Positions 542 to 20,105 of a DNA stretch of 58,044 nt are shown piece after piece; the first letter of the stretch is position 1; each line of letters begins with the position of its first letter. Made by a program: the position numbers and the translations under genes. The notes beneath the pieces are model-generated. The model was not told the DNA's origin. It was given only the letters and a program-made list of their open reading frames with translations, and searched no databases. Origin of the DNA: Dimorphilus gyrociliatus (lineage: Eukaryota; Animalia; Annelida). Location of the stretch: assembly GCA_904063045.1 (NCBI GenBank), contig CAJFCJ010000080.1, positions 1 through 58,044 of the forward strand, read 5' to 3'.

Positions 542-1112
542 AATCCTTTGACCAAGTAAATCTAAGCTTTGGTAAAAATCTTTTGTATAGTAAAAAATGG
601 TAGAATTTGACTAGAATTAGTTTTTCAATTGAGTAAATATTTTACTTTTCCTTCCATTGATTGTTAACAATGGAAAAGGCAAGTAATAAGTTATTGATGA
701 CAGATATAAGATATGTTGATTTTTTCTCCAATGTGTTGAGCATGTTTTGTATCATATTTCCAAAATAAAAATTTATGGCTCTTGAAATTGTATAATGATT
801 TTTCATAAATCATTCTGGTCAGGTAATAATGCAACAGTAGATATTATCCCTTTGTATTTATTAATGAATAAATACTGAACTTGCATGCAAAACTTTAAGT
901 CTATAGATAGGAATATATCAAGTATTAAAATCTTTATTTCCTTCTTGTGTTTTTGGTTAGGATTTTTGAGTTGTGTTAGTTGTAATGAATCGACACTGAT
1001 AAATCAAGTATAATTTTTTTATCTTTGTATGTGCCCAAACTCTTTTTCCATGCATTCCCAAAACTCTTGCCATCACCCTTAATTTCCCAATATCCTTCTA
1101 TTTTATAACTAT

Positions 1113-1370
1113 TGTACTGCTCTTGCTTGGCAAAATCTATGCGCTTGAAAGTTATAACAATACTGGTTCTACTCGAACCTTTAAACAAATGTTTAAATTA
1201 AAACGGTTTATTCGCAATAATAATACTTAAGCAAGTAACAATATGAGAGTTCAATAGCAGAGTTAGGTTAGGACTTGGGGTTAGGGTTAGGCCACACCCT
1301 AGGCAAGTTAATTAAATTATAACTTGACCAAACCTTTATTGGTAATTAAAGATGAGCCTTCAAGCTGACT
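1113..1370 (-). mobile_element. Internally deleted LTR (family B) with a telomere-like filler at the deletion junction
   Basis: Minus strand matches two non-adjacent parts of the LTRs at 27307-27848 and 41578-42199 and ends in GCAGTACA at 1113. The parts are joined by the tract at 1262-1291. Confidence 0.75.
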
Positions 1371-2469
1371 AATGAAACCTCTCTTTGGCCAATGTTATAG
1401 CATTTTCTTGCATAGATTTTTAAGATGTACATGTATAAGTTGCATAAAATAATAGAGTTCAAGCATGTTAAATATAACCAATGTTGTACACATGTACTAT
1501 GATATCTCAATTATATTCTGTAATTAATTGATGACTATTTTCTATAAAACTTTAAACAAACTACTTTAAAGGGGACAACCAATTTTGACTGTTTATTGAA
1601 AGTTGGTCTTGCAAAATTTACTGTGTCCAATTTTTCCTGCCATTTCCTTTATGGTTTCTCTCTATATTCTGATGTTTAACTTGTTAACTGAAGCAATTCA
1701 TTATTATTAAATATTAATAATTAAGAATGCTGTATGTTTTGAGAGTGTTTTCTGATCTTAAGTGAATGCTTTTTATCTCAACCCAAAAATACCATATATT
1801 CTACTTGCTGTGTTTAAATCAATACAAGAGAACAAAGAAAAGAAACACTCATTGATTAATATTCCATATGTATTCCTGTTGAAAGAATGTTTTTTATATT
1901 TCTGACATTTTAGAAATAAGGAACAAAAAATGAACTGAGGAAGCCCTATGAATTTTTCATAAATTGAATGAAGACATATTCAATCGAAAGATTGATTATT
2001 AATCTTTCTAAACAAAATTTTGAACTTTTATATTAATAATTCATAGAAATATTTCCTATATAACCACATAATGTTTTCTTATACATCTCAAATACGCTTT
2101 AGATTTTCCAAAAAAATAATGAATATTTTAATTTTTCAATTAATAACAATATTTCTTTTGACAATAAGAAATAATGATTGTGCAAGTAAAAATTATGATT
2201 TTTATATTTATTCATATTTCTCCTTATCTTTTATTAATATACAGTTTGCGATTTCTTTCATCAAGAAGATAAACAGTTAGCAACAAGCACATATGTTGTT
2301 ATTTATAATATAGATGATAGAGGAGTAGACTATTGTAAAAAGTTATGCTATTATCTTGAACTTTGCAAGTATGTTTATAGAAAGAGAGAGAGGGAGAGTA
2401 AAATCTACACATTTTTTCCACTTTAGGAGTTTCTATGTTGATAAACAGGATAACAACAAATGTTATCTT

Positions 2470-3023: not shown

Positions 3024-3152
3024 GTAAAGAATGTTTGTTTATTTTCAAACCCAAATCAATTAAATAGTTATCTTCATTTAATCATTTAACATATAACAAC
3101 ATGCCACAACATTAAAACTGCATGTATTCCACTTACAAAAAGTGTCAAAAAA

Positions 3153-3217
3153 TTTAGGGTTTGGAAAAGGTTTTTTTTGACTAAATCAAAAAAGAGAAAC
3201 AGAATTCTCAAACTTCA
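3153..3217 (-). repeat. 5'-truncated terminal fragment of the hammerhead-bearing repeat (pLTR family X)
   Basis: Reverse complement matches 7201-7260 and 11012-11073 (TGAAGT.TGAGAATT.TGTTTCTCTTTTTTGATTTAGTCAAAAAAA.CCTT) and ends in CCCTAA. Confidence 0.8.
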
Positions 3218-3670
3218 GGGTTAGGTCTTGGGGTTAGGGTTTTAACGCCCTAGAGTAGCACTCTCACTTTCTCCATGAGTGATACCCTTGGAAGGTTGCG
3301 TTCCACATTGAAGAATAACTATTCTGAATGACGGCAGGTTAATCTCTTAAGAACTGGGACCCTGAATTGTCAATTAGACGTGATACAAGGACCATTCCTC
3401 CGATTACGGGTTAGGGTTATTGTAATGTTGAACTAGATACTAAGATCTAAGTTCTGATGAAAGTTGAATAACTTCCACCAAAGTTTCAAGAGATTCCACA
3501 ATGGTATGGAATGCAAGAGTAAGAACACTCTGTACAAGTAAGACTATCTACAACTGATTGATGAAAAATGTTCAGTTTATGTTTTAATTTTTTGATGGTT
3601 ACTAAGAATAGTTGACCTACCATGGTTTTGTCTTCCCCTTTAGCAAAGACTCATCAGGGTCATTTCAGAA
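3218..3670 (-). mobile_element. PLE-type pseudo-LTR: hammerhead followed by a tail ending CCCTAACCCCAAGACCTAACCC
   Basis: Hammerhead motif at 3614-3661 and telomere-like tail at 3218-3240 on the same strand. Confidence 0.6.
3614..3661 (-). ncRNA. Type I hammerhead ribozyme, degenerate (GAAA to AAAA)
   Basis: GACC-CTGATGA-GTCTT(loop)AAGAC-AAAAC-CATG-GTA-GGTC. Stems I, II and III are intact; G12 is lost by a CpG-type change. Confidence 0.8.
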
Positions 3671-4525
3671 GATAGCTTCACTTACACTACTTTGAAGGGG
3701 AGGTGAGGACCAATTCTGCAATTGTATCCTGCCTTGCATTCTATTTTAGTTGGATGATTGTGTTTTAGAGGATACATGTTTGTAATTTTAATTTTGGAAC
3801 AGATTTTTTTCTTTGTACAATGTTTGAGTTATGTAGAGTGTATAAAGTAAATTCATATTTGTCTGATAAGTCTCATTTCAACAAGGAAGAAATGGCTTTG
3901 TTTAATGAATTAATTTTGAATGGATATGGTTTTTACTTGACAAAGAAACAAAAATTACTTCAAAGAAACACTATTGTACTTTTCTTTGAACATATAAATT
4001 ATAGAAATGTATAACTCACTCTGGTTTTCTTACACATTGTGTTCTGAAAATTTCTTCCTAATGCAGCCTGTAGAAGGTTTTTGGGTTATTTTTGTCTTTG
4101 TTTTGTTGTTTCTTGAGGCTGATTTCTTTTTATGATGGTATTTTTTTTCAACTGATGATATGTGGCTTGTTGTTACCCTTTTATAGGTGGTGGTTATGCA
4201 ATTGACATATATCAAGATATTGCATTTTTTCTTGAAGGTCATGTTTTACTGTGTAAGTCCTTCCTGGGATATGTCTGTTGACCATCTGTTGCTTCTATAT
4301 GGTAAAGTAAATACAAGGGATTTATGATGGACCTACAAATTTAATGAAGTACAATAAATGTATTTTTTTTGGTCTAAACAAACACAACATCAAAATGGAC
4401 TAATATAATGTATGTTTTCTAAAATTGCTTTTTTCTTCTTAGGCTTGATAAAATTATTCATTTGAAATATAAACATGCAAAGAATTAATAATTTTTATGG
4501 TTGAAAGTAACACTTCTGATTAATT

Positions 4526-5587
4526 TTACTGTTGATTTGAAGCTTGGAGAATTGGTCTGTTTAATTTCTTTTTTCTTCCAGTTCTACTTTGTTGTTGTTG
4601 AAAGACTTCTTTACACTTGACCATAATTTCATTGGTAATCAAGTGTTGAACAATATTTCTCAAAGAAGATATCTTTCCAGGCAGAACAGTACCATGAAAA
4701 GGATCTCCTCTTATGATGGTATTAATATCAATAATTTTTGTAAACATGTTGTTCAAGTTTTCAGATTGTGAGGCTGGTTGTTGATGCAGATCACTTTTTT
4801 TTATGTTATATTGCATAAATAATAAGCATTCATTAGTAACTCCAGTGCTTTTATACAAAGCTTTAAAATTATCATCAGCATCATTAATGGTGTTAAAGGG
4901 AATGTGAAGTGCTGTTATATGACTTTTTATTTTCCATTTGGATATAATTTCTTTACAATTTTGAAAGGTTAAGCCAGAAATGTTTATAATGAGAACAGTT
5001 CCAAAAAAGCTGATGTTTCTTTTAACATCTTCTACCTGAATTAAATCTAAGTCACCCAAACTTTCATCACTTAAAAGAAGTAAATTAATTTTGTTGGGAA
5101 ATCCTACAGCTGGTTGTTGTATTTTCATAAGATTGGTAATTTCTTCCTTTCCAAGATTCACTCCAATTTCTGTAAAAGATCTTACCATTTCATTAATATT
5201 TGAATTGTGTTTTCTATTAATTTTCATGTTATTGTTATATTTTAGAATATCATCAGTTTCATTAAGTTGTTGTAAAATCAATTCTACCAATTGTTCCTTG
5301 TTGATACTATTTGATATGCCTTCTTCATTAAGCCACAATTTTTCATTGCAAAATTTTTTAAACTTTAACATTTTTTCTACAACATCTTTCTCATATTGAC
5401 TTGGATCAAAAGTTGGTGGGTGAATTTTATTGTCTCTTTTAAACCTTTGAAGATGATTATAAAATGTTCCAAAATTGAAAAATTGTTCAAAAGAACATTG
5501 CAGGAAATGTTCCATTTCAATTGTTTCATTGATGATTATTTGGTCATTTTCTACTCTTTGAACTTGATTTGGTTGCATGTTTGCCAT
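4526..5587 (-). CDS. 353-aa protein with a C-terminal SGNH/GDSL-hydrolase-like domain
   Basis: Intact ORF. LLLSDESL, IINISGLTF, ALHIPFNTI and DPFH occur in SGNH block I/II/III/V order. A 3' splice acceptor (TTCTTGTATTTAG) lies just upstream of the ATG. Confidence 0.65.
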   Translation of the reverse strand: MANMQPNQVQRVENDQIIINETIEMEHFLQCSFEQFFNFGTFYNHLQRFKRDNKIHPPTFDPSQYEKDVVEKMLKFKKFCNEKLWLNEEGISNSINKEQLVELILQQLNETDDILKYNNNMKINRKHNSNINEMVRSFTEIGVNLGKEEITNLMKIQQPAVGFPNKINLLLLSDESLGDLDLIQVEDVKRNISFFGTVLIINISGLTFQNCKEIISKWKIKSHITALHIPFNTINDADDNFKALYKSTGVTNECLLFMQYNIKKSDLHQQPASQSENLNNMFTKIIDINTIIRGDPFHGTVLPGKISSLRNIVQHLITNEIMVKCKEVFQQQQSRTGRKKKLNRPILQASNQQ

Positions 5588-5754
5588 TTTGGAAGATCTA
5601 AATACAAGAAATTTTTATTGTAAAAGTTTTTGCAATTTTGTAACATAATACAAAAAATAATTTTAAATGAAGAAAGATAGACTACATGAACATAGGCTAC
5701 ACTGAACAGAATTAATCATTCTAAACTAAATCCTTCTAAAAATGTATTCAAAGC

Positions 5755-6603
5755 TTAAATTTTCTTCTTAATCCTACGTCCAGTTCTAATTATTTTCTCC
5801 ACAGCAGTTGTTGGTTGTAAATCATCTGTTTTATCATCCATCTTTCTTTTTGTGGTAAACTTTCTTGTTATTGTATCAAATTTAGGTCTTTTCTCTGGTA
5901 GAGAAGAAGGAGTAGTAGAGTTAGATGTATTATCAGACACATTTTTTCTTTTGTAAAAATGTTTGATTGTAGGTGGTACAGCTTTATTCATTGAATCTTG
6001 GTATTTTTGTGGTGTTTCCTTATCTGATGAACTCTTTTTATCAAATAAAGATGATATATTGTGTTTTTCCTGTTTAAAGTAAACATTGTTATTAATTAAT
6101 TTGAAATAACTACTGACATTGTTTGTAAAAGCAAATATCAGGGGAATATTTTTATATACCAAATAATTTTTTCCAAAATTTCTATAAGTTATTGCTATTT
6201 TTTTTAATAAGGGTCCAATATCATTTCTATATGGAATAACAAATGGTACTCTTGTAAAAACTTGACAACTGGTGTATCTGGCTAAACCAAAGGGATAATA
6301 AAGAATATGTTTCATATTCAAGTGATAAACATATCTATTAATTTCAACAGTTGATATATCTTTTTCAATTTGTTCATAGGGAAATATTGTTATGTTTAAT
6401 TGATTTTCTGCAAAATGTTGATGTTGTATAAAGTTTTCAACAAGCTCATCATTTTTTAATTCTAAATATTTTCTTAATAGAAGGTGTCTTAGTGTTTGGA
6501 ATATGTTGACTTTGGTATATTGTTCTTGTAAGTGGAAATACATATTTTTATTACTACATATTCTTATCTTTTTTTGACATGTTTGTAGAAATTTCTCACA
6601 CAT
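5755..6603 (-). CDS. 282-aa hypothetical protein with a basic, low-complexity C-terminus
   Basis: Long intact intronless ORF, co-oriented with the SGNH-like ORF. No family recognised. Confidence 0.55.
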   Translation of the reverse strand: MCEKFLQTCQKKIRICSNKNMYFHLQEQYTKVNIFQTLRHLLLRKYLELKNDELVENFIQHQHFAENQLNITIFPYEQIEKDISTVEINRYVYHLNMKHILYYPFGLARYTSCQVFTRVPFVIPYRNDIGPLLKKIAITYRNFGKNYLVYKNIPLIFAFTNNVSSYFKLINNNVYFKQEKHNISSLFDKKSSSDKETPQKYQDSMNKAVPPTIKHFYKRKNVSDNTSNSTTPSSLPEKRPKFDTITRKFTTKRKMDDKTDDLQPTTAVEKIIRTGRRIKKKI

Positions 6604-7272
6604 ACATTTAGTTTGCTTATCTGTGCTTTAAAAGTTTACAAATTTTATGTTCCCACATATCTGTTAGCATTATATGGTTTTATTTAAGCTTGATTAGCTT
6701 GTAGCATGTTCCCACAGGCTTTTCCATGTGCCTTATATATATAGCAAATATTTTTTCACAGTGATCATTTATAATTTGGAGATTAGGGAGTCAACATCAC
6801 ATTAAAAGTATCCAGTTAAATAAACATCTTCTACAATTGCTTTCAAAATATACATCCTTCAATAATAAAAATGGTATGTACATGATTCATAATACTGTAT
6901 TATTTTAAGTAGCACTTTTATTATGGTTTATATTGAATAAAAACTGAAGAAGAACCTTCCCTATTGGAAATCTTCAACCTCTCTATAGGTGTAGGTTATT
7001 AGACCCTGATGAGTCCTTGGTTTTGAACATAGAGAGGAGGACGAAACTGTGGTAGGTCGAGTAGGTAGGAAATTATCAAAATTTCAGAAAAAAAATTTTT
7101 TGAAAATTTTTTGAAAAAGTTTTTTATATTGGAAATTGTTTTAAATGTCGATTTTGGTGTGTTTTTTCTTTGACTGCTTCCCAAAAACAATTGGGACTCT
7201 TGAAGTGTGAGAATTTTGTTTCTCTTTTTTGATTTAGTCAAAAAAAACCTTTCTAACCCTAACCCTAACCCT
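6578..7272 (+). repeat. About 700-bp direct repeat (pLTR family X), copy 1, with hammerhead and CCCTAA tail
   Basis: Colinear with 10391-11101; contains the hammerhead at 7002-7058; ends in three CCCTAA-type units at 7253-7272. Confidence 0.85.
7002..7058 (+). ncRNA. Type I hammerhead ribozyme, intact core
   Basis: GACC-CTGATGA-GTCCT(loop)AGGAC-GAAAC-TGTG-GTA-GGTC. Loop II TAGAGAGG can pair with upstream CCTCTCTA (6978-6985). Confidence 0.92.
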
Positions 7273-7274
7273 GG

Positions 7275-7760
7275 GTTAAACTAACTCTGTTATTAATAAT
7301 CATAAAGCTTTCAAAGTTGGTACATACACTAATATTAATGCTCCGATCCTAAATCCTTTTACAGAATTCAATTATCTTGTATGGTTCAAAAGTTATGGCG
7401 CTGCTAAATTCTGTTGCTATTTCTTCTCCATAGGTCTATATAAAATATTCGTTAGGGTTGATAAAAGTTAGTTAATATGTACAATAGAGCTTTGAAATTC
7501 AGTTCATATAGTAATATTGGTACGCCGATTTCAAATCCGTTTACAGAATTCAATTATCTCTTTTGGTTCAAAAGTTATGGCAACTTTATTTTTTCGTCGA
7601 TACTTTGTATTTAGGCCTTAAAAAATATTTGTCATCTGAAAACTAACTTTCTTATTAGTTAGCTTAGAGCTTTGAAACTTGGTATATAGACTAATTTTGG
7701 TATGCCGATCTCAAATCTGCTTACAGAATCCAAATATCAGTACTGTTTTTGAGCTATTTG
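7275..7760 (+). repeat. Degenerate tandem array of about 190-bp units
   Basis: Recurrent TTTACAGAATTCAATTATCT...GGTTCAAAAGTTATGG and AGAGCTTTGAAA motifs at about 190-bp spacing. Confidence 0.7.
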
Positions 7761-8032
7761 CAATTAAAGTGTTTTACATTTTGCTGTTATAATTATTTTT
7801 ATTGTTATGATGTAGTTGTATTAAAAAGGTAATTGTTTAAAATGACTGTTTGTATTTGTATTTTTTTTGTGAATTTTATTTTCTATATTTGAGTTTCAGT
7901 GTGTTTTTTAATAATTACATGATTCTTTTTTAAATCCTACAGTGTAAAATGGACAATACACTGAACAGATGTGATTTTAAAATATATCTTAATCTTTTGA
8001 ATAAGTTTTAAAAAATTTTTCTTCCTTTACAG

Positions 8033-9424
8033 ATTTCTATAGGTGGGTCAACTCCACTGAGAGAGAAATGTATGAAAAACTTGTCATTCAATATTCAAGA
8101 GCCAACTTAATTCATCAACTGAAATATATTTTCAAGGTGCTAAAAAACAGTATGAGCAATGACTATTGTAAAACTTTTAGACCAGGATTGTACAAACAAT
8201 TTCTAAACATGCAATTAGTTGGAGATGAAAAAGTAACTGATGATAAGGAGATGGTTAATGATTTTGAAGAAATGGTACAAGATTTTGAACAAAAGTTTGA
8301 AAATTCCATTAAAAAGAGGTATAAAAAAAGAATAGACTTAAAAGATTATATCTTTCTTGAGCCTCTCTTAAAGTCATGTGAAAGTTGGTTAGAAGTAAAT
8401 AAAATATTGATGTTTTTAAAAGGCAAAATATTTGGCAATGAATCCTGTATAGAAGTTGAGGACTTGTTTAAAAATATACAAGAAATATATCATAAACAAC
8501 CAGAAGAACCACAGCAAGAATTAGAACAGCCAGAGGAAGTTCAAGAAGAAAAAAAAGAAGAAAGAGAACAAGTTGTTAAGCAAAATGAAAATGAATTAGA
8601 ACAACCAGAGGAACAACAGCAACAACAAGAAGCAGCAAGAATCAGAACAAGAGGAACAACCAGAAGAACAATTAAAACCAGAAGAGGAAGAAGAGCAAGA
8701 AGAAGTGTTATACTTTGAAACAAATCATCAGAATGAGCAAGAGGAAGAAATGGAGGTTGAGGAAAATGATATTGATGAAGCTGAATCAGAAAAAATTAAC
8801 ACTAGCAATGAATTATATATTAAACTCAAAGATCACAATGAAGAGTTATTCTTGCTGAGAAATTGCTGCTATCTTACTAAAATAAATTACAGAATGATAA
8901 ATGAAGAAAACCAAAAAGAACAGAAAAATTTTTTAAAATATCTCATTCCAACAATAAGGCAGAATTGTAAGATTATTTTTATTACAAATAATTTCTTTCA
9001 TTTAACTAAGACAGAATTTAATAATATTCTGAAAAATCTTGACATAGAAAATGTTCAATTTGTTGTAATTAGAAAAATATGCTTCAAAAGAATTGAAAAT
9101 GTTTTATGTGATTGGGGGATTAAAAACAAAGTAATAGTATTCCTTTGTAAAAAATACCCCAAAAGTGCTGGATTCATTCCTTGTCAATTTCTTAAGAAAA
9201 TTGAAAACAATTCAAATAAAGTTTTCTTACAAAAGAACTTTCTACCACCAAGAGTTGAAAGTACACTTAGGATTGCAAAATTCCAGTTTATAGACTTCAT
9301 ATTCAAAGATTATAAAAAAGAACAAACTTGTTTATTGAAATTAATGAAGCAATTTTTGAAACAATTATACAGACAACAACTTCATCTTTTTTTTTTATTT
9401 TATGTTTTTAATTCTAGATTATAG
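8033..9424 (+). pseudogene. One roughly 450-aa gene (helical N-terminus, E/Q-rich linker, SGNH-like domain) split by a frameshift near 8630-8640
   Basis: The E/Q-rich reading of ORF 8068-8718 continues in the frame of ORF 8705-9424 from about 8633. The C-terminal IRKICFKRIENVLCDWGIKNKV aligns with ISGLTFQNCKEIISKWKIKSHI of the 4526-5587 protein. Splice acceptor ends at 8032. Confidence 0.6.
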
Positions 9425-9639
9425 ATTATATCACTTTTTTTCTTTTTAATAAAAACAATTTTTTAAAACAAAAATTACTTTGCATTCAATTAAATTTACA
9501 ATTTTGATTCATTGGAATTTAATATAGGCTCATTCTATCAATAATTTTGCTTCAAATTTGATCAAAAATGGTGCAGTAGTTGCTGAGATATGGATTCCTA
9601 TGAATGTTATATATAAACTCTGTTTTGACAATTAAAATA

Positions 9640-10370
9640 TTCGTCATCCAAAAACTAAATTTGTTATTAATTACGATAGAGTTTTGAAATTTTGTACTTA
9701 TACTAATATTAGTATCCTAATCTCACATCTTTTTACATTAATATTTTTTAAATGAGAAATACTTAATAAATGTACCAAATGTCTTTCGAATTGTCCATAT
9801 TTTTTGTGACAATAATTTTATTTCAAATTTAATCAAAAATTGGTGCAGTAGTTGCTAAGATATGATTTTCTTTGAATGTTGTATTTAAACAGGGTTATTA
9901 GTGTATATAAAAAAATATTCGTCAGAAAAAAATTAAACTTGTTAATAGTTAAGATAGAGCTCTAAAATTTTGTACATAATTTAATATTATTATACCAATT
10001 CCAATTCTTTTTACAGAATTGAGTTATCTCTTATGGTTCCAGAGTTATGGCTCCATCAAATTATTTCTCATATATAAACCTATACAAAATATTTGTCATG
10101 GCTGCACTAACTCTGTTGTTAATTAAGATGTATATTTGTAATTCTGTACATAGATTAACATCACTACGCCTATCATAAATCTTTTTACAAAGTTCAATCA
10201 TCTCTTAAGGTTCCAGAGTTTTGGCACCATTAAAATTTACATGTTCTTTCTTTCATAAAAGCCTTTTTTAACATATTTGTCAGGGTAGCACTAACTCTGT
10301 TGTTAATTAAGATAGAGATTTTAGATTCAGTATATAGACTAATACCATAATGCTAATATCAAATTACTAC
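9640..10370 (+). repeat. Degenerate tandem array of about 190-bp units, same family as 7275-7760
   Basis: Repeated AAATATT.GTCA...CTAACTCTGTTGTTAATTAAGAT and GGTTCCAGAGTT.TGG motifs. Confidence 0.7.
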
Positions 10371-10390
10371 AAACTCTTATCTCTATTTAG

Positions 10391-11101
10391 CATGTTTGTA
10401 GAACTTTCTCACACACATAGGTTTAATTTGATTATTTGTGCTTTTAAACTTTACTAACTAACTTTATGTTCTCACATTGGCATTATATAATTTTATCTAT
10501 AGTTGATATGTTTGTGGCATGTTCCCACAGGCTTCTCCATATATTATATATACAATGTAGGCATTTTTTCACCGGATTCATTTGTAGTTTGAAGATTAAG
10601 GAGTCAACACCACATTAAAAGAAGATAGTTAAATGTACCACTTCTCCAATTCCTTTCAAAATATACATCTTTCAATGAAAGAATGGTATGTATATATTTC
10701 ATTAAACAGTATCATTGTAAATAGCACTTTTGATATGATATATATTGAAAAAACCTGAAGAAGAGAATTCCCTATTGGAAATCTTCAACCCCTCTGTAGG
10801 TGTAGGTTACTAGACCCTGATGAGTCCTTGGTAATGAATATAGAGAGGAGGACGAAACCGTGGTAGGTCGTGTAGGTAGGAAATAATAAAAAATTTCAGA
10901 AAAAAATTTTTTGAAAATTTTTTGAAAAAATCTTTTCTTTTGGAAATTGTTTTAAATGTCAATTTTGGTGTATTTTTTCTTTGACTGCTTCCCAAAAACA
11001 ATTGGGACTCTTGAAGTGTGAGAATTCTGTTTCTCTTTTTTGATTTAGTCAAAAAAAACCTTTTGCAAACCCTAACCTAACCTAACCCTAACCTAACCCT
11101 A
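10391..11101 (+). repeat. About 700-bp direct repeat (pLTR family X), copy 2, with hammerhead and CCCTAA tail
   Basis: Colinear with 6578-7272; hammerhead at 10813-10869; CCTAA/CCCTAA tract at 11068-11101. Confidence 0.85.
10813..10869 (+). ncRNA. Type I hammerhead ribozyme, intact core
   Basis: GACC-CTGATGA-GTCCT(loop)AGGAC-GAAAC-CGTG-GTA-GGTC. Confidence 0.92.
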
Positions 11102-11102
11102 G

Positions 11103-13049
11103 CCCAAAAGTAAACAAAAGTACAAGGGCTTTCAGGATCAAGAACTGGTCTCTAACTTACTTAAATCAAACCCTAACATCATTATAAAACCTGCTGATAA
11201 GGGTAGGAGAATTGTAATCATGGATAAAGAAGATTATGTATATGAGGCTCTTACACAACTTATGGATAGTACAACTTATAAAATAGTAGATCAAAAAATA
11301 AGCTCTACTAAATGGGCTAGAATCAATGAAATCCTACAGGAACTGGTCAAGAGAAAGATTATAAATAAGGCTACAGCAGCTTTGATAGCACCAGAGAACA
11401 ATGATGGGGAAAGAATTTTCTACCTACTTCCTAAGATACACAAACAGATGGGGGACTGGAGAATTCCAAACAAGATCCCTAAGGGAAGACCAGTAGTAAG
11501 CTATACAGGCTCTGACTTATATAAAATATCCAAATTTATTGACTACTACTTAGTCAGAATGGCCAAGAGCACTAACAGTTTTTTAAAAAACACCCAACAC
11601 TGTATCTCTAAATTTAAAAATATTGGCAACTGGCATAATAGAAAAATTTACACTGCAGATGTGGAGGCATTGTACCCCAGCATTAACCCTACATGGGGCT
11701 TAGCAGCAGTTAAAGAATATATGCAATCACACCCAGATATTGAGAGACCAGATGACTTGATATTGGAATTACTTTGGATCTGTCTTACAAACAATGATTT
11801 CCTCTTTGGAGACCATAGGTTCCTCCAGATTAAGGGTACTGCTATGGGAGCCCCATTCAGCCCTGCTTATGCCAACATAGTCCTACATACATGGGAACAT
11901 GGTATAGTTACTAAACAAGATCACAATGTAGAATACTATGGTAGATATATTGATGACATCATTGTTATAACAAAACCAGGAAAATGTATCACAGAACTTA
12001 TACTGGAACTGGAGAATAAAAATACAGATATTAAGCTAACATGGTCAAAAGACCCTAAAGCTGTTACTTTCTTGGATTTGGACTTACAAATTCAGGAAAA
12101 TAAACTGGTATGGCAGACTCACTTCAAAGAAACTGACTCTAGAATAATGTTACATACTAAATCCAACCACCCTAAACACACCTTCAAAGGGATTCTCATG
12201 AGCCAGCTCACAAGATATAAGAGAAACTGTAGTAACCCTGATGTAGCTATCAGGCAATTCAAAGAGCTTATAAATCTTAACAGAGATAATGGTTATACAA
12301 TATCTATGATGAGGAACACAATAAAAAAATGGAAAACAAAAGACAATGAAAATAATATCCAGAGCTATGAGATACAGAAATGTAATAGCATGAAATGTGA
12401 TACTTGTCTTAGATTAGGCTCTGATAATATGGTTTATGACTTATACAAAATTAATTATTGGGAACTTAAAGGTAACATCACCTGTTCCACCAAGGGATGT
12501 GTATATCTCCTACAATGCTCTACATGCTCTCTGGTCTATGTAGGCTTAACAACTGACTCCACTAAAAGTAGATGGGGAACCCATAACCTGGCTTTCAAGA
12601 GTAAACTAGATAGACCTTTATATAAACATATGCTGGAACATGGTATCAAGAAAATGAACATTTTTATTGCTTCAATAGCTCCAAAGGAGCTCAAAGATCA
12701 CCAACAGCAAATATGGCTAATGAGAAGAGAAACATATATAATTAATTATCTTGACACCAGAACCCCATATGGACTCAACAAACATCAGGGTTTCACAACT
12801 AAGGAGATGGTACCACTACTAATACCACAACATAATAAAGCTCAGGAAATAGCAAAAAAAGTTAGAGATGCAATTCACAATATGACCTTGGATAGCTCAC
12901 ATTTGAAACTATATAAGTCCATCACAGCTTTTAGAATTCCCACTACAACCAGAGCCCTGATAATCAACAAAAAGGTGGATGATATTATGGAGTCATATAT
13001 ACAGACACTATGTCAAAATAAGGCATGGAGCCTTCCCACTAACAGATGA
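11103..13049 (+). CDS. PLE reverse transcriptase + GIY-YIG endonuclease (open from 11103; first ATG at 11220)
   Basis: IIIKPADKG, YLLPKIHK, GRPVVS, ADVEALYPSI, QIKGTAMGAPFSP, RYIDD and FLDL motifs. Cys linker C-x4-C-x2-C...C, VYLLQCSTCSLVYVG, RWGTH, H-x3-H, RRE and GLN. Confidence 0.95.
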   Translation, partial: PKSKQKYKGFQDQELVSNLLKSNPNIIIKPADKGRRIVIMDKEDYVYEALTQLMDSTTYKIVDQKISSTKWARINEILQELVKRKIINKATAALIAPENNDGERIFYLLPKIHKQMGDWRIPNKIPKGRPVVSYTGSDLYKISKFIDYYLVRMAKSTNSFLKNTQHCISKFKNIGNWHNRKIYTADVEALYPSINPTWGLAAVKEYMQSHPDIERPDDLILELLWICLTNNDFLFGDHRFLQIKGTAMGAPFSPAYANIVLHTWEHGIVTKQDHNVEYYGRYIDDIIVITKPGKCITELILELENKNTDIKLTWSKDPKAVTFLDLDLQIQENKLVWQTHFKETDSRIMLHTKSNHPKHTFKGILMSQLTRYKRNCSNPDVAIRQFKELINLNRDNGYTISMMRNTIKKWKTKDNENNIQSYEIQKCNSMKCDTCLRLGSDNMVYDLYKINYWELKGNITCSTKGCVYLLQCSTCSLVYVGLTTDSTKSRWGTHNLAFKSKLDRPLYKHMLEHGIKKMNIFIASIAPKELKDHQQQIWLMRRETYIINYLDTRTPYGLNKHQGFTTKEMVPLLIPQHNKAQEIAKKVRDAIHNMTLDSSHLKLYKSITAFRIPTTTRALIINKKVDDIMESYIQTLCQNKAWSLPTNR

Positions 13050-13413
13050 CACAACAATAATCAACCAATAACTCAGTTCTGGCACTTGGAACCCTAAGAG
13101 CCCTGATAGCCCTGGGAGCCCTAAGGCCAAAATAATAGTTGGTAACAATCCTACTTATATTTGGGTGATATGGAAGCCACAATAACTTTAGTACCTTGGA
13201 TAGCCCTGAAAAACAACAACAGTGTTGAGAAAAAAGAAAAGTGTAAATAGATGGCACTAGTGCAAGGGTGGCCATCTATTGTAATATCAATTAACTACAC
13301 ATGTGTGTGTGTTTTTTATGTATATGCATATATATGGTGTTGGTTTGTATGTACTTAGTAAATTTTTTATGTTTGGTAAAAGGGTATATAAACTCAATTT
13401 TGTTCAAAAATGC

Positions 13414-13454
13414 ATAACCTGATGAAGCCTAGATAATAGGCGAAATATTGTTAT
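13414..13454 (+). ncRNA. Minimal type I hammerhead ribozyme (PLE-type, palindromic stem III region)
   Basis: ATAAC-CTGATGA-A-GCCTA-GATAA-TAGGC-GAAA-TATT-GTTAT. Confidence 0.88.
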
Positions 13455-13515
13455 ATTTCTTTTAATACAGTTTATTCAAAATTTTACTATGAGTCTTGGT
13501 GTTTCCTCTTTCTAA

Positions 13516-13813
13516 CCTGACCAGGGAGAGCCCTGCCTAACATACAATTTTATTTGGAGAAAACACTACCTATTTGGAGAAAACACTACTTATACTTAAT
13601 GCTAACCATATACTAAAACTGGGAGTACAGAGAGCCTTGATACTATATACAAGGGCTCTTACTCATCATTAATATTTCTAAGACCTGACCAGGGGGAACC
13701 CTGCCTAACATACAATTCCATTGGAAAATATTTCCTGGTACTTGGACCTTGAGACTAACCATATCCTAAACCAGGAGTACAGAGAGCCTTGATACTATAC
13801 ACAAGGGCTCTTA
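13516..13813 (+). repeat. Two tandem 168-bp structured units in the PLE 3' UTR
   Basis: Units start at 13516 and 13684. Each has hairpins CAGGG-N4-CCCTG and GAGCCTTG-N10-CAAGGGCTC. Confidence 0.8.
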
Positions 13814-14289
13814 TGTTAATAGTTCTGTGAGTGGCCTAACCCCAACCAAAACAAAACCTAACCCTAACCTAACCCTAACCCAGATACAAATTAGTGAAAC
13901 TTTACAACTAACCCTAACCTAAGATAATGGAACCAACACTTAACTCAGCAGAGAAGAAGGTACAGACTGGACAGACATGGGACCTGTTCTGAACAATTGT
14001 TAAATAATAAAGAATGGGGTAATTTGTGGGGAGACACCTCTCTATGAGAGAACAGATGGTTGACAGTTGGCAGTGAACAAAAGTTCCCCAACAAAAGGTC
14101 CCTTCTGGTTTCCCAATCAACACAAAGACAACCCATTGACAATCATACATGAGCAGTCTAATGTAACCATAACCTCTACCTTCAACCATCTCTCAGTGTA
14201 TTCCTTACATACAGGAACAAGTGTGTCTGATATATATAAGGGGTTGAAAGTTTAACATGGGTCCACAGACCGTATGCTACATAGTACCC

Positions 14290-14940
14290 TAAGGATATAT
14301 ATATCAAAGAGTTAGTTTTGATCCAAAAAAATCAGTGATGTGACAAAAATGTCCCAAATCTGGGCCGTTTAGGAGTTTCGTTATGCGTCATCCTAGACGT
14401 TTCAATTTTGTTGGAGGTGATAGAGCTCGAAAAGAGCTTTTCACTGATATGCTACACGACCATGTAGCTCTTACAGTTCAGGAGTGGCTGAGCTTCGAAA
14501 ATCGAAAATTTTCCGAGTTCGGGTAGAAAAATAAAAATATTTTTTTCTATCTTTCCGACGTAGGGGCAAGCTTGGATTCAAGTTTGAAAGCAATCCGACG
14601 ATTTTGAAAAATTGGCCTTCACTGAGGCTCTGGACTTGTAAAGATTTCGCGAAAATCATTAATTTTATAAGTTCATTGTCATGTTAATTACCTGTAAAAA
14701 CGTTACATTCGCCTGGGTACTTAGAAAGATTTTGGAAAAAATATTTTCCGAAAATATTCTAAGTCCAGCCTAACACAGTGTTAGGTTTTGGACTTAGAAA
14801 AATTTCGACTGAAAAAAGTCGATAAATTTTTCAAAAATATTCTAAGTCCAAATTGGAGGTGAAATCACCCCTTATCTTAGATTCAGTTATATTTCATGGT
14901 GCGGTAATGAATAGGGCTCTGGACCGCCCCATGCAAATAG
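14290..14940. repeat. CpG-rich, DNA-transposon-like segment with an internal palindrome cassette
   Basis: Visibly higher CpG content than the flanks; alternating TTCTAAGTCC/GGACTTAGAA units at 14718-14849. No ORF recognised. Confidence 0.4.
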
Positions 14941-14949
14941 GATTGGCCA

Positions 14950-15300
14950 TATATGTACAGAGGAAGGAACATAGAATTGAATCTAGGTCTTCTTCTGTTA
15001 CATTTTATGAAAAGTGACTTACCTGATTGTTATACCTGCGATTTTTGAAAGGTTACCCTCTAATTACTATAGAACGTAGGGTCGAGATACTGGTAATAGA
15101 GTCTAAGGCTGCCAGTCAGCCATCCTCACCTACCACCGTTAACTTCAAAGCTCCATAGCTCCGCAACCGCTGGGCCGATTTCGTTCAAATTTTGCACAGT
15201 TGCTCAGTTCAATTAGATCTAGCACTGTGTAAAATTTCATAACGATCGGAGCAAGTTGAAATTTCAACTTTCATCAGTGGTCGACTTGCTTTACTGACCA
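14950..15300 (+). repeat. Left arm of an approximately 350-bp diverged inverted repeat
   Basis: Colinear with the reverse complement of 16683-17036; both inner ends stop at GACTTGCTTTACTGACCA. Confidence 0.8.
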
Positions 15301-15364
15301 CCAAATAGGTGATTTGTTGCGAGATAAAGTGTGGGATCAAACCAGTACCTATCCTAAGGTATAG

Positions 15365-15694
15365 TAAGCCTCTCAGAGATCAGTCTGGTGGCAATCTAAC
15401 CAGCCACTTTTCCCCTCTCACTTGATAAAGGAGGAATACCTCCGAAATATTGTGAGTTTTAATCTGGTGACATTTTGTTAGTTGCTAAATACAGGTTCTC
15501 TTCACCCTTGTGGAGAATTTGTAAGTGGTTTTGTTGGAGATACAGTTACAGCTTAGGCTGGGGAATTGCTACTCAAGATAGCAACTCCTCAATAGCTACA
15601 CCAACCCTTAGCCAAAGCTTGGTTATAAGTGTGTGTGCACTTTTGGGATTGCCAGTCTGTACTGATTGTGCTAATCCCTAACCCCAAGACCTAA
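15365..15694 (+). mobile_element. Solo PLE pseudo-LTR (family Y) with degenerate hammerhead and CCCTAACCCCAAGACCTAA tail
   Basis: Colinear with the reverse complement of 43673-44005. Hammerhead 15417-15456 has core TTGATAA instead of CTGANGA, with intact stems. Confidence 0.8.
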
Positions 15695-15815
15695 TACAAC
15701 AAAGTACAAATACTTGCATAATTCATTTCATTAAATTTTTCAAAATTTTATTGTATTTCAGTGCACAAAAGAAATCAAGCCATCATTAGTATGAAATGTT
15801 ATCTCAGCCTCATTG

Positions 15816-16110
15816 CTAACAATGGCTCTGACATTCCTCACGTTTAGGACAAGAGATTTTCTGACAAGCAGAAAAGCATTGATATCTCTGTAAAAAATAG
15901 ATTGATTTTAATGTTGTTAATAATATATGTTACTCTTTTCAATACCGGTAGTCCTATTCTCTTATTTAATGTTTGATGAAGTGCATTAATTAATTCTTCT
16001 CTTTCCATTTGATTCAAAATGGATCTCAAACTGTTTTCAGACATTGGCAGTGAAAAAGTCTGGAGAGAAAGACAAACAACCAAGCAAACAATTAGAAGTT
16101 TTTTCTCCAT
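15816..16110 (-). CDS. 82-aa secreted prepropeptide with a Cys-rich mature peptide (exons 16110-15934 and 15887-15816)
   Basis: Signal-like MEKKLLIVCLVVCLSLQTFS and a 46-nt GT-AG intron (15933-15888) give ...KRIGLPVLKRR-YQCFSACQKISCPKREECQSHC-stop. TATA-like element near 16180-16187; AATAAA at 15752-15747. Confidence 0.7.
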
Positions 16111-16508
16111 TTTATCAGAATGCAAAACTGTTTCCCTCAGAAAGAAAAGCAATATAAAAATGTCATTTTCTCTCCTGCTCTTATAAAGACCAGCTCAAAA
16201 CTGGTTTAAAACAAGTTCTATTGTAAATATATTGAAAGAATATTGAAATTATTAAAAAGTTCATGAAAGCATTATATTTTGAACTAACCTTAAAGTATTA
16301 TAATCCTAACCTTCATCAATTTACAATAATAGATGTCAGAGTCTGAAAAAACAGAATGCACATTCAATAGATGAACAATGTTGAACTAATATTGCACTAT
16401 GCTTGTATTTTAATTTTTGGCCTACGCCTTTTGTGTCAAGGTTTTTCAATCTATGACTTACTGACAAGCTGAAATTGCACTCACACTGGATATAGGTTTA
16501 GTTAATAA

Positions 16509-16660
16509 GGATCCCACAGAAAATGTCCCCAAATGCATGGCTTAACCCTAACCCTATCCTAGCCCTTATCTTTCCCTGACCTCTTTTTTTACCTGTAACC
16601 CTTATATGGAACCTCCCTAACTACAAATCAATAGTTATTTTACTTCAAAGTATTGCTGAC
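16509..16660. mobile_element. Partial MULE-type MITE, same family as 33116-33319
   Basis: GGATCCCACAGAAAATGTCCCCAAATGCATGG matches the reverse complement of the 33.3-kb terminus. Confidence 0.55.
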
Positions 16661-16682
16661 TACTTTTCGTTTGCCTTGATAA

Positions 16683-17036
16683 TGGTCAGTAAAGCAAGTC
16701 ACCCATTAAAAATAGTCATATTTTCAAACTGCTCTGATTTGTTTGAAATTTTGCACAGAGTTAGGTATAGAACACACCAATCACTGTATATAATTTGAGC
16801 TAAATCGGCCCAGGCGTTTAGGACCTATGGTCGTTTGAAATAAATGTAGGTCACAACCAGTTGTCATGTGTTTGTGACTGCCACCAACTTTATCTGATAT
16901 TAATCCTTACATTTTACACCAATTAGAGGGTAACTTATCAAGTAAACACAGGTATATAAATCAATTTGCTACCTCTCAATACATGTAACACAGGAAGACC
17001 TAGATTCAATTCTATATTCCTTCCTATGTACATAAA
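16683..17036 (-). repeat. Right arm of the approximately 350-bp inverted repeat
   Basis: See 14950-15300. Confidence 0.8.
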
Positions 17037-17046
17037 TACATACATT

Positions 17047-17300
17047 TGGAACTAGAAACTCGTTTTTACTCAATACATATTCTTTGGGCGAAATACTGGT
17101 ATTTTGTTGATTCATTTCCTAACCTAACCCTAAACAAGCAAGTTTAAACAACCAGCTGACAGTTAGAGAACTGAACTGTCTACTGTTGAATTTGTAGGGT
17201 TTATATACTTTTCCAATAGTTAACAGTTCACAGATAAAACTATGCACACAAACAAATGTAATAATTTGGATAAAGGAAAAGTTCAAATATACTTCCATAT
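17047..17300. mobile_element. Two LTR (family A/C/E) fragments in opposite orientation, joined by CCTAACCTAACCCTAA
   Basis: 17047-17117 matches the LTR R/U5 region forward. 17134-17300 matches the adjacent upstream LTR region in reverse (compare 30150-30320). Confidence 0.75.
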
Positions 17301-17307
17301 TTATTAC

Positions 17308-17913
17308 TGTACAACTTTCGTTCTATTCTATTCTTATTCTATACTACTATTATACATAACTTACTACAAACTGATGCAAGGAAATATAATAACATGTGGC
17401 TTAACACAGACCTTCTTGGTCATACTTAAGGTTCATCCTAAGTACCACTTAAGTTTTGGCCACATTATGATTGATGAGCTTGTCTAAGGTTTTGGCCAAA
17501 CTATGATTAATTAACTTTCTCAAGTGGGGAACTTTGTAACATATTGTTCTAAGGACAAACATGAACTAGGTGAGTTCACAGCTGTAAACTGTTGATTGGA
17601 TGCTAGACAATAATCTTCAAGTATATAACTCCTCACTGCTTTACTCCAATCAGCTAACCTCAACATGGGAGGATCAACTGGAACCAATGCCCACTGAGAT
17701 CTTTCTACTTCCTCAACATTGGACACTAGCTTGGTAATTTGTCAACCTACTGTTACCCACTACTTACTCTGCTATTGAACTTTCATATTGTTACTTGCTT
17801 AAGTATTATTTTCAATAAAGCACTTGAATTGAAACACTTTGTTTAAAGGTTTGAGTAGAACCAGTACTGTTATAAGTTACAAACACATAAATTGGCAAGA
17901 CCAAAGCAGTACA
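17308..17913 (+). mobile_element. 5' LTR (family B), TGTACA...AGTACA
   Basis: TG...CA termini, followed by a PBS and gag. Homologous to 27307-27848 and 41578-42199. Confidence 0.9.
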
Positions 17914-17917
17914 AATT

Positions 17918-17936
17918 TGGCACAGTTGACAGGATT
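17918..17936 (+). promoter_or_regulatory. Primer-binding site, tRNA-Ser-like
   Basis: TGGCACAGTTGACAGGATT, 4 nt after the LTR. The other copy reads TGGTGCAGTCGACAGGATT. Both resemble the TGGCGCAGTCG..AGGAT tRNA-Ser PBS of 17.6/297-type elements. Confidence 0.75.
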
Positions 17937-17977
17937 TTCTAATTTGGTTTATTTATACTTTTGGAAGAAAAGGAAAT

Positions 17978-19599
17978 ATGGTAGAAGGAGGTAATGGAAA
18001 TACCACTGGAGCAGTCACAGACACTAATCCTTCTACCCCAGCAACTCCAACAATCACAATTCAACCAGCAGGGATTTCAGAAAGGCAGCAGAGACTAATT
18101 GAGGACTATGATAGATTGGTATATGAAATGAAAAGAAATAATATTACAATTCCTCCAGGCTCTGAAAATGTAACACCTCACCCAGTACAAAATCCCAATG
18201 TAGATATTACAACCCTAATTCAAACATTGAGAGCTGCTTGGGACTGCCCTCAAAGAGCTATCCTCAGGTTATATGATGGTAGCAAGGAATGTTCAAAATT
18301 CAAGGAAAACTTTTATCAAGCATGCAATGCTTAAGGTTGGGTTGGTGAACATAGTATGAAAGCAAATCTTTTAGATTACTTAACTGGCCCAGCAGTTGGT
18401 CAACACTCTGCATCCAAGATGTCAAACATTGGCAGAATTATATGATGCTGCTAAATAAGCAGAAATTTCATTAAAGTTAAACCAGAGAAAATCAATCACA
18501 ATGGTGTCTAAGTTGGAAACAAAGGAACAAAAAAAGACCAAAGTGATTAACAAAGATGCTTCAACAGAAACCCCAAGTTTTTGGAATAGACAGCATCCAC
18601 CTGACTACAGGAAGGCTGCTAAAGAAAAGTGGCAAAGCCAGAAATTCCAAAAGTATGCACCCCCTATGAATAGGTATTATAAGAAAAATCAACAAGCCAA
18701 GTTGATCCTGAAGGAGGAACCTAAGCTACAAAAATTGGAAACACTGGAAAATGACAGTTCATCAGAAAATGATGAAGTACAAGATATTCTCTGTTTTTCT
18801 GATAGTTAAGAATCTATATGTCAGTTTTTACAAAGTAAACAAACTGAGAGAAATTCTTCAACTTTTATTGGACAATTTGAAACTAAAACTGGCTTCAAAT
18901 TTGATGCCTTAATAGACTCTGGTAGTGACAGGTCTTTTATTTCAAAAACAGTATTAAAACAAATTCAAGGGAAAGCATCCTTTCCAGAGCCAACTGTGAA
19001 AAATGCTAGAGATGCTTCAGGCAACAGCATTGAGATATATGGCGAAATTATTTTAAAACTACACATCAATGGGAAAATTATTAAGCAAAGCTTCCTAATC
19101 AACAAAACCATAACACAAAAGTGTATTATAGGTTGTGATTTTCTACAACAGACTGGAGCAACTCTTGACTTTTACAAAGGACAGATTATACTGCAGTCAA
19201 TTACAGAAAAGAATTATCCACTTGAAACTCAACATTTATCCTTCAAAGGACTTCACCCAGTTCCTTCCATCACAAAGAAAAGTGAAAGTCAAATACATAG
19301 TCTTCAGACAAATATTGAACAGGAAAATTCAGAGCTGGAACTAAAAGTCACAAAAACTCTGGAAAATATCAAGATACTATTGCAGAAGACAGATTTGACA
19401 TTGGCAATCCAGATGCTCCACCCCTGGAAATTACTTTACAACCAGGTTCAACCCCATATAGACAAAAGCCTTATAGAATGCCTCCTCAAAAACAAGAAGA
19501 GTGCAAGCAACAAATAGCTGAATTAGTAAAAAGCAAAGTTATTCAACCAAGCAAGAGTAACTGGGCTTCACCAATTGTTTTTGTAAGAAAGAAGGAAGG
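17978..19599 (+). pseudogene. gag: Defective gag-protease-(start of RT) of Gypsy family B
   Basis: ORFs 17978-18334, 18501-18809 and 18996-19517; FDALIDSGS protease motif; PYRMP...SNWASPIVFVRKKEG RT start; stops and frameshifts. Confidence 0.85.
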
Positions 19600-20087: not shown

Positions 20088-20105
20088 CCTAACCCTAACC
20101 CTAAC

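Follow-up and report, generated by a model that had tools for sequence, protein, structure and literature searches.

A stretch of 58,044 nucleotides from the annelid Dimorphilus gyrociliatus (contig CAJFCJ010000080.1 of assembly GCA_904063045.1, analysed whole and referred to here as the window) carries a series of sequences related to Penelope-like elements (PLEs). The window is an island of transposable elements (TEs) that also holds gypsy-type pieces of the Dingle kind, a C-type lectin gene and a leucine-rich-repeat (LRR) gene. Dozens of its repeat pieces recur, at 75-99% identity, in contigs of the same assembly. TE islands are known in the D. gyrociliatus genome, of which PLEs make up 0.44% without having been described further (PMC7854359). 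Between 3150 and 15700 the window is quite probably a composite of at least six 3'-anchored PLE copies with 5' truncations of varying extent, which belong to two lineages and are joined at CCCTAA-like tails. This description draws on the observed anatomy, homologies, copy-number gradient and junctions of the locus. The main features are listed below, in which ORF stands for open reading frame, RT for reverse transcriptase, EN for endonuclease, UTR for untranslated region and pLTR for pseudo-long terminal repeat; a slash within a ribozyme sequence marks the cleavage site.

3150 to 3217, minus strand: 64-nt 3' block with a short CCAAACCCTAAA tail, an extreme 5'-truncated copy of the pLTR-A/pLTR-B family.
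3218 to 3240, minus strand: reverse-telomeric tail CCCTAACCCCAAGACCTAACCC, the end of the minus-strand unit.
3218 to 3747, minus strand: high-copy 3' UTR segment of the minus-strand unit; word depth falls at about 3740 and contigs diverge at 3685-3747.
3614 to 3661, minus strand: type-ii hammerhead, GACC-CUGAUGAG-helix II-CAAAAC-CAUG-GUA/GGUC, with a palindromic helix III (ACCAUGGU).
4526 to 5587, minus strand: ORF353, a free-standing accessory ORF whose C-terminal half is a PLE-associated alpha/beta domain.
5755 to 6603, minus strand: ORF282, the end of a 5'-truncated PLE polyprotein, with an eroded remnant of a GIY-YIG endonuclease, its C-terminal half (YYPFGLARYT...VPFVIPY).
6322 to 6379 and 6528 to 6761, plus strand: two probable GT..AG introns of an RNA transcribed antisense to ORF282 and continuing into pLTR-A.
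6550 to 7275, plus strand: pLTR-A, with a type-ii hammerhead at 7002-7058 (cleavage 7054/7055), the 64-nt 3' block and the tail TAACCCTAACCCTAACCCT.
7280 to 7772, plus strand: about three diverged tandem repeats of about 180 nt, related to those at 9539-10344.
8068 to 9424, plus strand: ORF216 (8068-8718) and ORF239 (8705-9424), one gene in two overlapping frames, the second open from about 8600.
9539 to 10344, plus strand: diverged tandem repeats with a spacing of 174-278 nt, upstream of pLTR-B.
10363 to 11107, plus strand: pLTR-B, with a type-ii hammerhead at 10813-10869 (cleavage 10865/10866), the 64-nt block and a 38-nt CCCTAA/CCTAA tail.
11103 to 13049, plus strand: 5'-truncated ORF of a canonical endonuclease-positive (EN+) PLE, with RT, a CX4CxxC linker and an intact GIY-YIG domain containing CCHH.
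13414 to 13454, plus strand: type-i hammerhead of the RT-EN unit, AUAAC-CUGAUGA-AGCCU..AGGC-GAAA-UAU-U/GUUAU.
13835 to 13880, plus strand: tail of the RT-EN unit, CCTAACCCCAACCAAAACAAAACCTAACCCTAACCTAACCCTAACCC.
13881 to 15697, plus strand: unit E, non-coding, 1.8 kb; its type-i hammerhead, near 15420-15450, is decayed, and its tail reads CCCTAACCCCAAGACCTAA.
43953 to 43915, minus strand: type-i hammerhead of a second PLE family, CUCAC-CUGAAGA-AGGAGG..CCUCC-GAAA-UAU-A/GUGAG.

The sequence-only reading had described a chain of units, each ending in a hammerhead and a reverse-telomeric tail, beside a PLE with a GIY-YIG endonuclease, and the features of that chain were recovered with shifts of at most about 30 nt. 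The window contains 16 CCCTAA-type 12-mers where 0.15 would be expected, and tails lie at 7257-7275, 11070-11107 and 13835-13880 on the plus strand and at 3240-3218 on the minus strand. One identical string, CCCTAACCCCAAGACCTAA, ends three units of different families, namely the minus-strand unit, the second PLE family (43694-43673, minus strand) and unit E (15676-15697, plus strand). The units show the tandem and inverted arrangement typical of PLEs: on the plus strand they follow one another head-to-tail, at about 6550-6603 two of them meet head-to-head, and truncation points lie at 11097 and 6603.

Junctions in which a tail is followed by the 5' end of the next unit recur along the chain, as judged from the RT frame, from unit E at two loci and from the 64-nt stub. 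Immediately behind the pLTR-B tail, at 11103, the RT frame becomes open, and similarity to its closest relative, P0002 (46% identity), begins at P0002 residue 96, which corresponds to nucleotide 11097; the RT copy has therefore lost its 5' end and adjoins a tail that is not its own. Missing from it are about 95 N-terminal amino acids and all of ORF1. Unit E is 95-98% identical to L002:12929-15338, in another D. gyrociliatus contig, and begins at the same base in both loci, each time behind the tail of a different PLE. The copy in L002 (L002:12929-15351) holds a secondary insertion of about 640 nt. The stub at 3150-3217 is 97% identical to 11012-11075 and 92-96% identical to 7201-7262, and is joined straight onto the tail at 3240-3218. 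Both defined and truncated 5' ends are thus found at junctions of this kind. The RT-EN unit has its tail at 13835-13880; the last of the tails proposed in the sequence-only reading, at 13908-13922, lies inside the 5' end of unit E.

Copy number was followed by word depth, taken from unitigs, in a deep DNA run (X1) with a single-copy level of about 300. ORF216/239 and the 5' half of pLTR-A have a depth of about 300, ORF282 one of 600-900, and ORF353 one of 1,000-1,300, i.e. roughly 2-4 times the single-copy level. The depth reaches 9,000-23,000 at 3140-3739 and 4,700-16,800 at 6940-7339, the only high-copy part of pLTR-A. Relative to a single copy, it falls from about 30-70-fold at the 3' ends to 1-4-fold over the ORFs. 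Such a gradient is what 3'-anchored, 5'-truncating retrotransposition is expected to leave, which argues that ORF282 and ORF353 belong with the hammerhead and tail at the end of the minus-strand unit.

Two hammerhead architectures are present. Type ii, GACC-CUGAUGAG-UCC..GGA-CGAAAC-YGUG-GUA/GGUC, was found in pLTR-A, in pLTR-B, in the minus-strand unit, in a partial copy near 49.0 kb and in the 3' UTR of an RT element in L004, a contig of the Logan assemblies considered below. Its intact core, CTGATGAG-N-CGAAAC, lies at 7006-7047 in pLTR-A and at 10817-10858 in pLTR-B, two matches where 0.05 are expected. In the alignment of type-ii sequences 86% of the cells are paired and four pairs show compensatory changes, against 1.4 in shuffled alignments, and slid controls gave far lower values. 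Helix III consists of 2 bp closed by a self-complementary 4-nt loop (ACCAUGGU, ACCGUGGU), in agreement with the dimer-prone minimal form of the hammerhead described for PLEs. The minus-strand hammerhead lies precisely where it had been placed, at 3661-3614 before the tail at 3240-3218, but it reads CAAAAC, not CGAAAC, the catalytic G12 being changed to A at 3629; paralogous copies of the same repeat, in a contig from run X1, keep CGAAAC.

Type i, N5-CUGAHGA-stem-GAAA-UAU-H/N5', is found in the RT-EN unit and in the second PLE family. The two copies differ by compensatory changes in helix I (AUAAC with GUUAU versus CUCAC with GUGAG) and helix II (GCCU with AGGC versus GGAGG with CCUCC), and this covariation bears out the proposal that the RT ORF has a hammerhead of its own, at 13414-13454. 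A match of the 3' UTR of the RT unit to pLTR-A/B or to the 3' end of the minus-strand unit was also considered and rejected, as only the hammerhead core and the tail are common to them. At gathering thresholds Rfam detected no hammerhead in the window, and its type III model (Hammerhead_3) gave sub-threshold matches at both pLTR cores. The low scores are attributable to the motifs being minimal type I forms, with a helix III that is 2 bp long or without a loop, which the models score poorly. The cores begin either 251-254 nt or 416-418 nt upstream of the tails, and the cleavage sites lie about 200-390 nt upstream of them. An Athena-like geometry is not supported; in Athena elements the cleavage site immediately adjoins the tail.

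The direct repeats at 6550-7270 and 10363-11082 are 84% identical over 732 nt. The starts of the two pLTRs had been set 28 nt too far in, at 6578 and 10391 instead of 6550 and 10363. The pLTRs can hardly be taken as one pair framing the gene between them, being 16% diverged and high-copy only in their last 330 nt or so. The first 53 nt of pLTR-A (6550-6602) and of pLTR-B (10363-10415) are 87% identical and antisense to the first codons of ORF282, so that both pLTRs share the head-to-head junction. The common piece could stem from a retrotransposed read-through RNA or from DNA duplication. The joints of the introns at 6322-6379 and 6528-6761, which have consensus splice sites, were seen in runs X2 and X3 (of uncertain type) and not in the deep DNA run X1, and the spliced plus-strand form contains no long ORF. 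These joints suggest a spliced non-coding RNA, antisense to ORF282, that enters pLTR-A, which fits published ideas of bidirectional PLE transcription (PMC3846280). The repeats of about 180 nt on either side of ORF216/239 were not detected by Tandem Repeats Finder, since their copies are only about 70% alike.

None of the four non-RT ORFs matched Pfam, and neither BLASTP nor Smith-Waterman comparison aligned ORF353 with ORF239 or ORF282 with ORF216. A word-indexed homology search returned nothing for ORF282 and only a chimeric gene model for ORF353, and nothing usable on ORF353 or ORF239 came from the ESM Atlas. When ORF353 was the query, exhaustive phmmer searching detected a pair of proteins from the Logan assemblies, P0122 and P0123. 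The P0123 locus is represented by contigs L004 and L005, of which L004 (Logan ERR14224706, 8326 nt) carries, beside P0123, an ORF of 1327 amino acids with a PLE RT that is 33-36% identical to P0002 and to the RT of the window. This polyprotein contains the ORF353-type domain upstream of the RT, at residues 379-551, and downstream of the RT a segment (residues 1161-1271) that is 29% identical to ORF282 (E 3e-15). The source of L004 is AT-rich; the polyprotein, with its alpha/beta domain, RT and eroded EN, stands head-to-head with P0123 and a 225-residue alpha/beta ORF, and the arrangement is repeated in three runs (contigs L004, L005 and L006).

ORF353, ORF239, P0123, P0122, the neighbouring 225-residue ORF and the segment of the L004 polyprotein form one alpha/beta family of six sequences. 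In leave-one-out profile searches the members score 25-146 bits (45.5 bits for ORF353 and 27.2 bits for ORF239), and none of 2000 shuffles reaches any of these scores. The profile found the domain in none of the canonical PLE proteins tested. ORF239 also matches P0123 directly (E 1.4e-4). By these sequence comparisons ORF353 and ORF239 are paralogous, a relationship detectable only through P0123 and profiles. In L004 the domain occurs both fused to the RT and free-standing, whereas the window holds only free-standing ORFs. ORF216/239 follows the layout of P0123, with an N-terminal part, an acidic linker and the alpha/beta domain; the single frame break falls inside the acidic linker and is identical in contigs of three runs. 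ORF282 scores 13.0 bits against a profile of the C-termini of canonical PLE endonucleases (0 of 2000 shuffles). In the alignment the YIG motif, the catalytic Glu and Asn and the PYGLN positions are eroded both in ORF282 and in L004, and the endonuclease remnant of ORF282 is followed by a basic tail rich in Ser and Thr. A low-recognition ESM Atlas assignment of ORF282 to an RFC1 C-terminal domain was rejected in favour of this tested homology.

Since ORF282 is an endonuclease remnant and the alpha/beta domain is fused to an RT in L004, the ORF units look like 5'-truncated copies of an RT-bearing, multi-ORF lineage. The extra ORFs are best read as the own genes of that PLE lineage, not as captured cargo. 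The sequence-only reading had rightly seen the two accessory ORFs as PLE-associated, their relatives lying beside or inside PLE RT ORFs, and had gone on to propose that the ORF units are RT-less cargo, framed by hammerhead pLTRs and mobilised in trans by the neighbouring GIY-YIG PLE. In favour of that mode of spread, ORF216/239 is flanked by pLTR-A and pLTR-B in direct orientation, an open RT-EN ORF adjoins, and PLE-mediated mobilisation of a host gene between pLTRs has been published (PMC3846280). Since the short high-copy pieces of hammerhead and tail are devoid of an RT, short units are likely to be mobilised in trans to some extent. For the ORF units themselves cargo status is nonetheless unlikely, given the two homologies above, the 16% divergence of the pLTRs around a single-copy gene, and a neighbouring RT from the other lineage, whose hammerhead is of a different type, whose 3' UTR is unrelated and whose own 5' end is truncated at its junction.

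It is more doubtful still, and in our view very improbable, that host genes, whole or as remnants, account for the ORFs and became enclosed when PLEs inserted independently around them in a TE island. ORF216/239 is indeed single-copy and has no relatives outside its small family, the genome is known for such islands (PMC7854359), and capture between neighbouring elements, as in Terminon arrays, has been noted in a review (PMC6431247). Against this stand the PLE endonuclease homology of ORF282, the alpha/beta family, whose only relatives adjoin or lie inside PLE RT ORFs, and the multiplicity of ORF353, with some 2-4 near-identical copies and an 81% identical fragment elsewhere. The fragment lies in the D. 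gyrociliatus contig L001 (CAJFCJ010000043.1), in which the gene model DgyrCDS14481 (F5/8 type C domain; L001:10001-11705) has at its end 75 residues with 67% identity to ORF353; this model is probably a chimera with a TE fragment.

Both accessory ORFs had also been called SGNH-like. Their paralogy was confirmed by profile, as described above, but no SGNH assignment was obtained. Pfam gave nothing at E<=1-10 for any member of the alpha/beta family, the family profile had no match among PDB sequences at E<=10, and hhalign against Escherichia coli TesA returned a probability of 0.09. In the alignment the catalytic Ser of block I (GDS) and the His of block V are not conserved, and there is no positionally conserved His in the family. 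Block I reads SDES in ORF353, TNNF in ORF239, TDET and CDES in others, and GDSS or ADSS only in P0123 and P0122. In these two proteins GDSS/ADSS follows strand 1 and GKH-L-T stands close to the end, an SGNH-like order, and both ORFs of the window are without these residues. Single-sequence AlphaFold models of ORF353 and ORF239 were unusable (predicted local distance difference test values, pLDDT, of 34 and 42); Foldseek with these low-pLDDT models gave nothing at E<0.03, and the assorted Rossmann-like and integrase-core chains at E>=0.03 were disregarded. The alternating pattern of strands and helices fits the SGNH fold and is not specific to it. An active esterase in the two copies of the window is unlikely.

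The RT of the window belongs to a different kind of element. Within the ORF at 11220-13049 Pfam recognised RVT_1 and GIY-YIG, the latter at residues 425-510, and 1987 RT relatives share the architecture DUF8422/RVT_1/HTH_animal/GIY-YIG, the best of them with 46% identity over 98% of the query. The RT is of PLE type, with a KPADKG motif in its N-terminal part, and the endonuclease motifs (CNSMKCDTC, VYLLQCSTC..YVG, H..H, RRETYI and PYGLN) are those of the Neptune/Nematis type. With such an endonuclease-positive enzyme, an Athena RT is not supported.

The second PLE family, at 42193-44002 on the minus strand, has an upstream pLTR that carries the type-i hammerhead at 43953-43915 and the tail at 43694-43673. 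ORF325 (43655-42678) starts 18 nt after this tail and is homologous to a 269-residue ORF1 upstream of the RT in the Logan contig L003 (z = 18). The RT N-terminus at 42729-42193 overlaps ORF325 and is 61% identical to DgyrCDS14716. A separate, conserved ORF1 seems unusual among EN+ PLEs. The cleavage site of the hammerhead at 43953-43915 directly precedes GUGAGU, a consensus splice donor.

Taken as copies of two lineages, the units of the chain would be assigned as follows. Lineage 1 would comprise the minus-strand unit (6603 to 3218), the unit from 8068 to 11107, pLTR-A and the 64-nt stub (3217 to 3150). It would be a multi-ORF PLE with an eroded GIY-YIG domain, an alpha/beta accessory domain and a type-ii hammerhead about 250-420 nt before the tail. 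Its copies in the window would have lost the RT through 5' truncation, with ORF282 as the surviving end of the polyprotein and ORF353 and ORF216/239 as accessory genes of the lineage itself. Lineage 2, with the unit from 11103 to 13880, the fragments at 43.7 kb and unit E, would be a canonical EN+ PLE. Its endonuclease would be of Neptune/Nematis type, its full copies would carry ORF1 as a separate frame, and its hammerhead would be of type i, with a tail like that of lineage 1.

How priming takes place, and by which enzyme the target is nicked, are matters of inference. Most likely, integration begins at a TTAGGG-like 3' end paired to the RNA tail: the RT would start its cDNA on an RNA 3' end of the (CCCUAA)n kind that is paired to a G-rich, TTAGGG-like 3' end, the candidates for which are the overhang of a telomere, a break, and a nick within a tail already in place. 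New copies would then land behind older tails and build head-to-tail chains, and incomplete reverse transcription would yield the 5' truncations. Chains might also arise without telomere-like priming, if the GIY-YIG endonuclease targeted telomere-like repeats, so that tails already in place drew in new copies, or if the RT switched templates at shared tails within one integration. We lean away from this explanation while regarding it as a real possibility: the endonuclease of lineage 2 is intact, EN+ PLEs favour microsatellite targets and typically form tandem and inverted insertions (PMC8557442), the tails are short, imperfect and partly fixed in sequence within families, and the window shows no sign of being a chromosome end. 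It bears, however, on the integration step alone and is compatible with the anatomy of a two-lineage composite as set out above. Tail priming, endonuclease targeting of tails and template switching at tails may all three coexist.

Several observations weigh against the composite of two tail-joined lineages, or against the priming step added to it. No full-length, RT-bearing copy of lineage 1 was retrieved from D. gyrociliatus, the RT fusion being known only from the Logan contig L004. The unit of ORF216/239 is single-copy and has repeats of about 180 nt on both sides, which the model leaves unexplained. ORF216 alone has no significant relative; against the EN C-terminal and alpha/beta profiles about half or more of the shuffles score equally, and against the N-terminus of P0123 the z-score is 2.2. 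The shared 53-nt piece of the pLTRs points to a more complicated history, involving a common head-to-head junction or retrotransposed read-through RNA. The window contains no terminal (TTAGGG)n array and so does not itself demonstrate telomere priming. Finally, the junctions within high-copy repeats are not bridged by long reads, and unitig depth reflects copy number only roughly.

In the reviews consulted, reverse-telomeric tails beside hammerheads are assigned to the Athena and Coprina clades, which lack the endonuclease (EN-), and giant multi-ORF Terminons to bdelloid rotifers (Arkhipova et al. 2017, as summarised in PMC8557442 and PMC6431247); none of the papers searched reported reverse-telomeric tails in EN+ PLEs. 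The chain in the window resembles Terminons and Athena elements in its hammerheads and short reverse-complement telomeric repeats at 3' ends, in 5'-truncated copies that sit at short telomeric stretches in head-to-tail order, in accessory ORFs beyond the RT, and in the loss of a working endonuclease in lineage 1. It differs in its annelid host with TTAGGG-type repeats and in lineage 2, which is fully EN+. Lineage 1 keeps an eroded GIY-YIG domain fused to the RT and so descends from EN+ elements; membership in Athena is unsupported, in a comparison made without labelled Athena references. In contrast to the giant Terminons of 20-40 kb, the units are fragments of 0.07-3.8 kb, and those that bear ORFs lack an RT and lie on opposite strands, a multi-ORF unit with RT being found in L004. 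Further differences are an accessory domain that is not a demonstrable GDSL esterase and a window that shows no sign of being a chromosome end. The likeness to Terminons, outside rotifers, thus covers tails, chains, extra ORFs and an eroded endonuclease; the EN+ RT, the distant hammerhead and the lack of a giant unit speak against membership in Athena or the Terminons.

The system in the window shares with the Neptune/Nematis EN+ PLEs (PMC8557442) the order of RT, CX2-5CxxC linker and GIY-YIG with internal CCHH, as well as a minimal hammerhead in the 3' or pLTR region, tandem and head-to-head arrangements and an intron in the pLTR region, a likeness read from motifs and arrangement. Unlike those elements, it has a reverse-telomeric 3' tail, described in the literature only for EN- clades, and a separate ORF1 upstream of the RT-EN ORF (ORF325 and the ORF1 of L003). 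The host-gene mobilisation by Penelope elements of Adineta vaga (PMC3846280) is similar in that a non-RT gene lies between two direct pLTR-like units beside PLE sequences; in the present case, however, the gene between them is a member of a PLE-associated domain family, both pLTRs are old and have diverged, and target-site duplications were not identified. SGNH/GDSL esterase ORFs are known from Terminons, from bdelloid LTR elements and from CR1-like long interspersed nuclear elements (PMC5408684, PMC6431247). The accessory domain recalls them as an alpha/beta domain borne by a retroelement and in the SGNH-like order of the motifs in P0123 and P0122; unlike them, it has no statistical match by Pfam, PDB profile or hhalign, and its Ser and His are not conserved.

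On a wider view, which we hold tentatively and with slightly less than even confidence, D. gyrociliatus and at least one or two other organisms of the Logan assemblies harbour a PLE lineage that came from EN+ ancestors of Neptune type, in which the GIY-YIG domain decayed and a new alpha/beta domain, possibly derived from SGNH proteins, occurs both fused to the RT and in extra ORFs. Together with EN+ two-ORF relatives, this lineage would integrate through a reverse-telomeric RNA tail, associated with a hammerhead, that pairs with TTAGGG-type 3' ends. If true, Terminon-like telomere-primed retroelements would have had a convergent, independent origin outside rotifers, and the lineage-2 elements would be the first case of EN+ PLEs bearing telomeric tails. 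Telomerase has its closest relatives in the reverse transcriptases of PLEs. That EN+ and EN-eroded PLEs of an annelid share ends made of hammerhead and CCCTAA repeats, and are chained to one another's tails, would make less sharp the published separation of intrachromosomal EN+ from telomeric EN- elements and possibly reveal an intermediate stage. The analysis also defines a new PLE accessory protein domain, RT-fused and free-standing, and corrects the gene model DgyrCDS14481, which probably contains a fragment of a lineage-1 element.

Other repeats and genes share the window. A family of short interspersed nuclear element (SINE)-like repeats of about 640 nt is represented at 1107-1490(-), 17305-17918(+), 27303-27858(+), 41573-42206(-) and 53213-53376(-), with 70-96% identity. 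An insertion of this repeat interrupts unit E in L002, and the one located at 1107-1490 adjoins a CCCTAA-type tail at 1291-1263. Gypsy-type pieces at 18996-25734 encode protease, RT and integrase, with a long ORF after the integrase. They match the published Dingle family with its herpesvirus gB-like env and are thus already known (PMC7854359). Two further plus-strand ORFs, one of 401 amino acids with three C-type lectin domains (35781-36986) and one of 468 amino acids with leucine-rich repeats (49423-50829), are probably host genes within the TE island.

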